Assembly: GCA_004764695.1 (NCBI GenBank)
Contig: SMSO01000037.1
Span: 224,747 to 288,746 of the forward strand
Direction: 5' to 3'
Origin: Schizochytrium sp. TIO01
Taxonomy: Eukaryota; Protista; Bigyra: Labyrinthulomycetes
DNA length: 64,000 bases
The position numbers and the translations under genes are program-made. The notes beneath the pieces were generated by a model, which ran no database searches, was not told where the DNA came from, and saw only the letters and a program-made list of their open reading frames with translations. Below are positions 62,165-64,000 of the stretch, piece after piece (positions within the stretch are counted from its first letter, which is position 1; each line of letters begins with the position of its first letter).

Positions 62165-62791
62165 CAGGCAAAGCATAGCATAGCATAGTATAGAGTAGCA
62201 GAGCATAGCGAGGCGTAGCGTGGCGGAGGCCTATGGTAAAGGGTAGGTGGGGCTAGCTAGGGAGGAGGCTTTGTTTTCTTAGTTTGTTTGACGATGATCA
62301 CTTATGGAAAGTAGAAAGGAAGGAAGAAAGAAAGTGTTTGTTTAAACTTTGATTGAAAATACTTTTGAATTGGGAAATGATTGACTCGGAAAGAGAAATG
62401 AAAAAAGAAGGAAAGTTGCAGCGGCAAAGCAGAAACCGGCTGTCTCAGACTGCCGCATCGCAGCAACGCCTCTGGCGATTCAATCTTGCGCCGCGACGCT
62501 GACCTGCACAAACTTGCCAGCAAACCCGGATCGAGAACAGGCCCGCCACCAGAAAGACAAACTCAGAAACCATATAACAAAGGCGCCGCCACAGCAACAA
62601 CAGACCTGGAGCTTCGCGAACAGCACTCTGCTCGTCACCCCCCCCCCCAAATATATATATATCATACTGTATCAAATACATATCTATATAATATCACATC
62701 AAGAGCGCCTCTCTTGGTCAAGTTCTCTCGTGTGACACCGCATACGTGATTTGATCAAAGTAGAACTCGGCGCTCAGTAGACAAAACCATA

Positions 62792-64000
62792 ATGGAGACA
62801 ATGATCAAGACAGAGTACATGGGCATCCGTGAACCGCTTGATGCCGATGTTGATGCAATGCTCAAGGAATCGTTTTTGTCCGATGACGAGGTTCTTGGCC
62901 TCGGATTGCAGCTTGTGAAGATGGAGGACGAAAGCCACCACGACGAGAACGATGATGATGATCTTTTGGATCTTGACGCCGCGCAGATGATGGACCTCGA
63001 GCTCCCACCACTGATGGACTCAACGACTTCGTTCGTAGACCAGATCGACTTCTCACCAGCCAACGAAAGGAGAATTGGAGAGAAGAACAAGCGCAGGAGC
63101 AACAGCTTTTCACACGAAGATTCTGTCGCATACACAGCTGCGCCTTTGCCTCCTGCTTCGGTTTCGAGAACAACCACCACCAAGGGTGGCGTAAACCGAT
63201 CCCTTTTGCAAGACCAGGTTCACTCAATCGTGAAACAAGAGCCTGATACCGAGGAGCAACAGCCGCCTCGTGCTGCCCTGACAAGCGACCTCAATGCTCT
63301 TTCGAACCCAAGCTCTCGTCAGAATGAGTTCATGCGTGTGACTTCGCAGCCTCCTCTCGAGGTTCGTACTCGCACCAAGAACGAGAACCGCACCTTCGGC
63401 TGCGAGGTTCAGGTTCTTCGCATTCCGGATCCTGCAAACGCAAAGGCTAGCGTGGAGTTATGCTATGCTACCGACACCAGCGTCATCATCTCTACAATGG
63501 GCGGCACTCTTACTCGTCCTGTGGCCAAGGGTCGTGTCACGTTTGACGACCTCAGTGTCAGTGTGGCCTCCCCCAAACACGCAGAGAAAGAGTTTGTGCT
63601 TAAGGTTACCCTTGCCGGTGCTCCCGACCACCCTGTGTACTCAACGCCTTTCTATGCTTATTCCCACAAGAGCGTCTTGAAGCGTCGCCGTGAGGTATCT
63701 CTTCGTGCTGCTAGCCACAATGTTGTTTCCGCTCGCGGTGGCGAAGACATGCACGTCGTTGGTCTCCCCTTTGTGCGATCTGACCGCCTTCAAGTCGTCT
63801 TCCGCGTGCACAAAAGACACTGCTCGGATTGCCTCGAAAGCGTCCAGGCAGAGAGCTCCATGCACGGTGCAACAAACCCCAATGAAGACTGGTTTTCCAT
63901 TCGAGCTACAGACCTTGAGTTCTTTTCAGAGAGCGTACTCTTCTTCCGCACTCCTACCGTCTTTGCCAACACCACACAAGATGTACCATGTTCTCTTCAA
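62792..64000 (+). CDS. Putative transcription factor with Rel/STAT-like Ig-fold DNA-binding domain plus IPT/TIG domain (3' truncated by window end)
   Basis: Translated by hand: 403 codons open from ATG 62792 (METMIKTEYMG...) to the window edge. Acidic N-terminus, then MRVTSQPPLEVRTRTK...VTFDDLSV...FVLKVTL...VYSTPFYAYSHK, then GGEDMHVVGLPF...LQVVF...W...SVLFFRTP (IPT-like). The CDS itself is well supported; the family assignment is less certain. Confidence 0.8.
   Translation, partial: METMIKTEYMGIREPLDADVDAMLKESFLSDDEVLGLGLQLVKMEDESHHDENDDDDLLDLDAAQMMDLELPPLMDSTTSFVDQIDFSPANERRIGEKNKRRSNSFSHEDSVAYTAAPLPPASVSRTTTTKGGVNRSLLQDQVHSIVKQEPDTEEQQPPRAALTSDLNALSNPSSRQNEFMRVTSQPPLEVRTRTKNENRTFGCEVQVLRIPDPANAKASVELCYATDTSVIISTMGGTLTRPVAKGRVTFDDLSVSVASPKHAEKEFVLKVTLAGAPDHPVYSTPFYAYSHKSVLKRRREVSLRAASHNVVSARGGEDMHVVGLPFVRSDRLQVVFRVHKRHCSDCLESVQAESSMHGATNPNEDWFSIRATDLEFFSESVLFFRTPTVFANTTQDVPCSLQ

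Follow-up and report, generated by a model that had tools for sequence, protein, structure and literature searches.

Transcription factors built on a Rel homology region (NF-kB, Rel, NFAT and NFAT5/TonEBP) are treated as holozoan in the literature searched (PMC13042239, PMC8677719). For Dictyostelia the RHR/RHD, COE/EBF, Runt and CSL classes are listed as absent (PMC6873476), and neither Rel nor STAT nor p53 appears among the classes named in a census of stramenopile transcription factors (PMC4222949). The velvet proteins are described as specific to fungi (PMC6231087). In our own literature searches we found neither a link between Rel homology domains and Amoebozoa nor a mention of Rel homology in the stramenopile, oomycete and haptophyte literature. 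Here we characterized a gene at the end of a 64,000 nucleotide stretch of DNA from Schizochytrium sp. TIO01 (in the following "the window"; positions 224747-288746 of contig C36, from a source genome of 64 Mb in 37 contigs). By sequence the encoded protein falls outside the Rel family, which it resembles in design. Overall we consider it fairly probable that it is a thraustochytrid transcription factor of the DG1062 family, sequence-specific and with a Rel-like two-domain core.

A first-pass annotation of the window had reported an open frame of 403 codons that did not appear in the list of open reading frames (ORFs). Translation of positions 62792-64000 on the plus strand indeed gave 403 codons from an ATG without any stop, and the frame is missing from the list because no stop occurs within the window. 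In the extended sequence L001, where window position x corresponds to position x minus 61899, the full frame covers L001:893-2209. It comprises 438 codons plus stop, of which the last 108 nt lie beyond the window. The whole frame forms one exon; codons 404-438 and the stop are located at the window-equivalent positions 64001-64108 (L001:2102-2209). An in-frame stop is located 45 nt before the ATG. The full-length protein has neither ankyrin repeats nor an SH2 domain, about which the annotation had asked. The features of the gene are as follows.

62792..64000, plus strand: coding sequence of the Rel-homology-region-like protein, codons 1-403 of 438 (by translation; full ORF in L001)
62483..64000, continuing to ~64704 (window-equivalent), plus strand: probable unspliced transcript (contigs of four runs, no joints)
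62792..63061, plus strand: acidic N-terminal region, residues 1-90; 26 D+E versus 4 K+R, net charge -22
63068..63097, plus strand: basic patch RRIGEKNKRR, residues 93-102
63323..63667, plus strand: domain 1, residues 178-292; predicted compact beta-sandwich of the p53-like/Rel-N/velvet type, corresponding to DG1062_N in relatives
63347..63397, plus strand: putative DNA-recognition loop QPPLEVRTRTKNENRTF, residues 186-202; first inter-strand loop, from column counts
63542..63586, plus strand: second conserved segment FDDLSVSVASPKHAE, residues 251-265; strand and loop S260-x-K262-H263
63668..63715, plus strand: basic inter-domain linker KSVLKRRREVSLRAAS, residues 293-308, partly helical (model residues 124-131)
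63716..64000, plus strand: domain 2, residues 309 to ~420, the last ~17 outside the window; predicted IPT/TIG domain of the Rel/NFAT dimerisation type

The structure of residues 170-438 was predicted with AlphaFold2 from an alignment of 44 sequences. The model consists of two beta-sandwiches that are joined by a short helix, with a mean predicted local distance difference test (pLDDT) value of 92.2 and a predicted template modelling score of 0.84. For domain 1 modelled alone a pLDDT of 94.1 was obtained. The domain borders in the model, at residues about 178-292 and 309-420, agree with those drawn earlier at positions 63332-63670 and 63694-63990, and all motifs quoted at that time are present in the translation (MRVTSQPPLEVRTRTK, VTFDDLSV, FVLKVTL, STPFYAYSHK, GGEDMHVVGLPF, LQVVF and SVLFFRTP). 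When the whole core was compared with known structures, the best 39 Foldseek matches listed were all Rel homology regions of NFAT, NF-kB or TonEBP, and the alignments to RelA, p52, NFAT1 and TonEBP extended over the full length of the core. The Rel-type architecture of a sandwich in tandem with an IPT domain, as it had been proposed, is thereby supported along the entire core. Fold and domain architecture are predicted with high confidence. As in the Rel homology region, an s-type immunoglobulin-like sandwich is followed by a short basic linker and then by the IPT domain.

Comparing domain 1 alone with known structures yielded the following matches, in which rows less than one Z unit apart are tied:

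VosA (velvet): Z 11.5, 110 residues aligned, root-mean-square deviation 2.9, 22% identity
VeA (velvet): Z 10.9, 23% identity
p52: Z 10.4
p65: Z 10.2
Runt: Z 10.1
TonEBP: Z 9.5
STAT1: Z 9.0, 21% identity
Dictyostelium STAT: Z 8.5
p50: Z 8.1
EBF1: Z 8.1

Foldseek placed VosA, STAT1, STAT5 and Runx1 on top (E 4e-5 to 1e-3). The suggestion that this domain folds as a p53/Rel-type sandwich was therefore borne out by a confident model (pLDDT 94) with velvet, Rel N-domains, Runt, TonEBP and STAT as its best matches. According to the model, domain 1 would belong to the p53-like class of transcription-factor sandwiches, with velvet and Rel N-domains nearest and no choice between the two, and it may be presumed to bind DNA. 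Velvet, Runt and STAT are as close to it as Rel is, and sequence methods link it to none of them. Domain 1 is also far more compact (~115 residues) than its counterparts in Rel proteins.

With the fungal velvet proteins (VosA, VelB, VeA) the likeness is confined to the fold of domain 1. The Velvet hidden Markov model (PF11754) matched neither the window protein nor its 44 relatives, nor the genome, where the search was silent for the controls as well. Moreover, the window protein carries an IPT domain, whereas velvet proteins have none and dimerise via the velvet domain itself. EBF/COE, CSL and STAT score below Rel and velvet, and the window protein is devoid of the zinc knuckle or helix-loop-helix of EBF/COE, the beta-trefoil of CSL and the SH2 domain or coiled coil of STAT. 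Runt, another p53-like sandwich, likewise scores below Rel and velvet but lies within one Z unit of p52 and p65 and is therefore tied with them.

Domain 2 has an IPT/TIG fold. Rel/NFAT dimerisation domains rank first among its matches both by structure and by sequence profile, in agreement with the parallel to NFAT and RelA that had been drawn from the sequence. Searching all PDB sequences with the family profile returned the IPT domain of NFAT5 (E 0.003), then RelB only, and nothing for domain 1. No Pfam family had matches in more relatives than RHD_dimer (PF16179), with 7 of 44, all of them below the cut-off; the best, in P0025, reached 23.6 bits versus a cut-off of 28.3 and covered model positions 4-102 of 103. 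TIG (PF01833) matched 5 of the 44, one of which (P0016) was above the cut-off when rescanned singly. The window protein itself had no RHD_dimer match. In the Pfam copy scanned, which did not contain the PF28397 model, neither the 403-residue nor the 438-residue protein nor pieces of the core gave a match at E <= 10, and a phmmer search of the PDB sequences was equally without match. RHD_DNA_bind (PF00554) was found neither in the window protein at E <= 10 nor in the 44 relatives at E <= 1; its absence from the six-frame translated genome carries little weight, since control genomes were equally silent. STAT_bind matched neither the window protein nor the 44 aligned members.

Conservation was counted by alignment column over the 44 aligned family members. 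It is highest in [QH]-P-P-x-E-V-R-T-R-T-x-x-[ED]-x-R-x-F at residues 186-202. This stretch takes in the loops flanking the short second strand and lies between the first and the third strand (model strands 12-16/21-23 and 33-39). P187, R192, E/D198, R200 and F202 were present in all 44 members, T193 in 43 and R194 in 40. The recognition loop of Rel proteins has the motif R-x-(R/H)-Y-x-(C/T)-E. In the loop found here, R192-T-R194-T-K-N-E198, this strict motif is not matched: the two arginines and the acidic residue are kept (44, 40 and 44 of 44) while tyrosine and cysteine of RxRYxCE are replaced. Like the Rel loop, it opens with QP and contains R-x-R-x-x-x-E. The structural alignment with p65 begins at model residue 10, which is chain residue 19. 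If the p65 sequence is continued from there without gaps, F-M-R-V-T-S-Q-P would presumably fall on Y-V-E-I-I-E-Q-P, with QP on QP. RTRTKNE would then precede the position of RFRYKCE of p65 by one residue, R-x-R-x-K-x-E being common to both. We infer from the model that residues 186-202 occupy the place of the recognition loop of Rel proteins, and the earlier statement that RTRTKNE sits where Rel has RxRYxCE, retaining R-x-R-x-x-x-E, holds in this sense.

The second conserved segment (F251 and L254 in 44 of 44, S260 in 42, K262 in 40 and H263 in 37) resembles, as the annotation had noted, the 'F.DLSV' segment of velvet proteins, a comparison based on the fold alone. Conserved is also P-F-Y-A-Y-S-H. 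The linker reads V-L-x-R-R-R-x-V-x-L-R, with V295 and L296 found in 43 members each, R298 in 41 and R299 in all 44. Its charge of +4.8 equals the family median. In Rel proteins the linker touches the DNA backbone, and the same role may be presumed here. In domain 2, M-H-V-x-G-x-P-F, E-x-F-S-E-S-V-L-F-F and V-T-N-D-G-R-x-F-S-N are conserved. As a separate observation, residues 216-261 (GG..T.P...G.V.F.DLSV) weakly match a repeated unit in two giant proteins, P0105 (2440 residues, 12 stretches) and P0115 (1799 residues, 6 stretches), a match that a common immunoglobulin-like strand pair, and not kinship, may explain.

The best homologue of the protein was FCC1311_107712 of Hondaea fermentalgiana. 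Their identity is 66% overall and reaches 82% in the 314 aligned columns of the family tree, which places both proteins as sisters with a support of 99. Another close homologue was found in Thraustochytrium sp. LLF1b. Hondaea and Thraustochytrium belong to the Thraustochytrida within the Stramenopiles; the host is a thraustochytrid and, as had been supposed, not an opisthokont. At E <= 1e-3 we obtained 63 homologues in a large protein collection and 92 in a protein search of representatives. Those that carry a name are all called 'hypothetical' or 'uncharacterized'. They occur in dictyostelids (D. purpureum, Acytostelium, Tieghemostelium, Polysphondylium, Synstelium), in other Amoebozoa (Ceratiomyxa, Protostelium, Phalansterium, Clydonella), in Diphylleia rotans (CRuMs) and in the alveolate Colponema vietnamica, and one stands in a record labelled Batrachochytrium salamandrivorans BASA81. 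The family forms a well-conserved group of its own across Amoebozoa, SAR and CRuMs. The profile search of the large collection recovered family members only and reached no velvet, Rel or STAT proteins.

Five homologues (P0015, P0020, P0025, P0037 and P0061) carry a precomputed Pfam label, PF28397, at E values from 7e-32 to 5e-18, and our family profile finds the labelled P0061 at 2e-87. In the Atlas output PF28397 is DG1062_N; this label is also that of the clusters closest to domain 1, and for DG1062_N clusters oomycete and haptophyte members are recorded. We take the label to be named after Dictyostelium DG1062. The literature searched did not link DG1062 to Dictyostelium, and a search started from a dictyostelid member brought up no named D. 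discoideum DG1062 entry. Judged by these sequence matches, the window protein belongs to the DG1062_N family, which is already catalogued in the newest Pfam release; its members were found without functional description. The first-pass annotation had suggested an uncharacterised Rel-like family in a stramenopile. That the family is uncharacterised and its host a stramenopile stood up, and the relatives carry the uncharacterised DG1062_N label only, rather than that of a known unrelated family. The proposal as a whole stands, with three reservations: the family is broad and not specific to stramenopiles, a Pfam label for it exists, and what it shares with Rel is fold and architecture, homology being no more than a possibility. 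In one member, PPL_05494 of Heterostelium album (P0161), the gene model joins the family core to an alpha-galactosidase (PF16499, PF17801, PF02065); this is probably the merging of two adjacent genes in the annotation and not a real fusion.

Contigs from four public runs of four different studies (X1, X5, X11 and X19) were 1622-2219 nt long and colinear with L001:584-2805, with no joints. The 5' intergenic DNA (L001:1-484) was uncovered in all four runs, and the convergent gene downstream was found on separate contigs in the same runs. The start of the 5' untranslated region falls between ~62483 and ~62683. This contig pattern suggests an unspliced transcript of the Rel-like gene. We grade its transcription as probable because the 'RNA' label of the four runs is a guess by the tool; the gene itself is intact. 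Contigs from near-identical strains contained 16 substitutions inside the ORF, of which 12 were synonymous. Two of the four replacements (T130I and S145A) are located in the disordered N-terminal half and one (G423A) in the tail. M357I, the sole replacement inside the fold, affects domain 2 in a variable loop. Purifying selection acts on the folded core.

Within the acidic residues 1-90, the acidic-hydrophobic motif DAMLKESFLSDDEVLGL recurs near the N-terminus of thraustochytrid, dictyostelid and environmental homologues, and the region is a putative activation or regulatory region. The basic patch RRIGEKNKRR has similar counterparts in Hondaea (RRIGQKNKRQ) and P0009 (GAKRKRRGR) and represents a candidate nuclear localisation signal. 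At its other end the protein terminates in a basic tail, KRHCAAIRSRM, of the form K-R-x-x-x-x-R-S-R-M (L001:2155-2209; window-equivalent 64054-64108).

The protein is most likely a sequence-specific transcription factor, for which we infer DNA binding, dimerisation, activation and nuclear import. Its layout comprises the acidic N-terminus (1-90), the basic patch (93-102), the two-domain core (~178-420) and the basic tail ending RSRM. Contacts to DNA would come from the invariant QPPxEVRTRTxxExR loop together with that at S-x-K-H, and from the basic linker. Through their IPT domains two molecules would dimerise on a dyad site in the manner of NF-kB and NFAT5, and the acidic N-terminus could recruit the transcription machinery. 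A homodimer prediction with two copies of residues 170-438 gave 0.46 versus 0.38 for the control, values that speak neither for nor against dimerisation.

Several observations weigh against a DNA-binding factor. The net charge of domain 1 is only slightly positive (+2), no Pfam or PDB sequence matches this domain even at E <= 10, and the lower-ranked structural matches include two-sandwich proteins that do not bind DNA. Furthermore, [SA]-R-[MFIL] forms the C-terminus of 62 out of 119 family proteins collected. It resembles a peroxisomal targeting signal type 1 (PTS1), which is unexpected for a nuclear protein. The motif stands at the very end whatever the length of the tail, from 20 to 177 residues. 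Such dependence on the end is typical of PTS1 signals, PDZ ligands and 14-3-3 mode III sites, and SRM, SRI, SRL and ARL fit the PTS1 pattern. The protein could therefore be a cytosolic or peroxisomal module for binding proteins or ligands that shares with the transcription factors nothing but the fold and in which SRM is a working PTS1. This we regard as unlikely, and we keep it mainly on account of the C-terminal end motif; the barely basic domain 1 and the missing sequence link to any DNA-binding family also speak in its favour. Nearly all of the top structural neighbours of domain 1 are nevertheless DNA-binding domains of transcription factors, and the invariant residues are not those of the core alone but surface arginine, threonine and glutamate at the position of the recognition loop. 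Long N-termini that are acidic, of low complexity or rich in poly-Q/N typify transcription factors, but not proteins of the peroxisomal matrix. Many members, moreover, end in RSYL, RSLL or RSRY or have no tail, which does not fit a PTS1.

Other alternatives concern the origin of the sandwich. Domain 1 could be a DNA-binding domain of the STAT or CudA type, a lineage known from Amoebozoa, that was joined to an IPT domain, such that the Rel-like architecture would be convergent. The stretch QPPxxV[RK]T resembles the STAT motif EKQPPQVLKTQTK. The family is also abundant in dictyostelids, which have STAT and Cud factors as well (PMC6873476, PMC5923282). We find this origin improbable, given that coiled coil, linker and SH2 domain are all missing, that an IPT domain follows domain 1 instead, that STAT_bind remained unmatched in the protein and the 44 aligned members and that velvet and Rel N-domains outscore STAT. 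Members of the Cud family comprise one from Entamoeba and, in D. discoideum, five cudA homologues (PMC5923282), whereas our named matches include no Entamoeba protein and only one of D. purpureum; hit lists of this kind would argue against the two families being identical. A true Rel homology member of the NF-kB/NFAT kind, be it a strongly diverged orthologue or an acquisition by gene transfer from a holozoan, would account for the full-length structural matches, the NFAT5 IPT profile match, the sub-threshold RHD_dimer matches over the whole model in seven relatives and the R-x-R-x-x-x-E of the loop. It is nonetheless very improbable and the least credible of the readings considered here: RHD_DNA_bind matches neither protein, relatives nor genome, RHD_dimer stays below its cut-off, and the ~115 residues of domain 1 compare with ~170-200 in the aligned Rel N-domain chains. 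The domain is, moreover, equally close to velvet and Runt, and the family members from Amoebozoa, SAR and CRuMs group among themselves. Ankyrin repeats, a glycine-rich region and a calcineurin-docking region, all known from Rel proteins, are absent from the window protein, and its host is a stramenopile.

In its own genome the Rel-like gene is a single copy according to the family profile search. The sole other match of this profile, a TIG/IPT-like stretch at C30:447326-447565 (L004; E 1.8e-7), sits inside an uninterrupted frame of 4929 codons, i.e. a giant protein. About 0.85 kb downstream of the Rel-like gene follows the convergent neighbour on the minus strand (L001:3055-3561, extended as L002:3701-5533), a frame of 610 codons with an acidic C-terminal part in which a repeated E-Q-A-L-x-x-S resembles ubiquitin-interacting motifs. 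A Pfam scan of the neighbouring ORFs, including a 168-residue piece of this gene, gave no match. On the minus strand of window positions 62755-63284, antisense to the region coding for the acidic N-terminus, two ORFs of 140-142 codons are found; these are probably shadow frames and have no support as genes.

Returning to the Rel-like transcription factor, it is conceivable, though we hold it as a tentative idea, that the DG1062 family is the Rel homology region outside Holozoa. A sandwich plus IPT domain with a QP...R-x-R-x-x-x-E loop would then have existed early in eukaryotes and been kept in Amoebozoa, stramenopiles, alveolates, CRuMs and probably haptophytes. NF-kB and NFAT of animals and, after loss of the IPT domain, velvet of fungi would each derive from the same ancestor within their own lineage. 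By analogy, the C-terminal [SA]-R-[MFIL] might bar the factor from the nucleus in the absence of a signal, a role like that of IkB and the ankyrin repeats for NF-kB. If the proteins are homologous, the two-domain Rel design would move back towards the root of the eukaryotes and may be much older than animals and their close relatives, and the family would bridge Rel and velvet. The family would add an unrecognised class of transcription factors to the catalogues of Dictyostelium and the stramenopiles, and for the oil-producing thraustochytrids it would provide a new candidate regulator. Dictyostelium and Aurantiochytrium can both be transformed, such that the idea is directly testable there.

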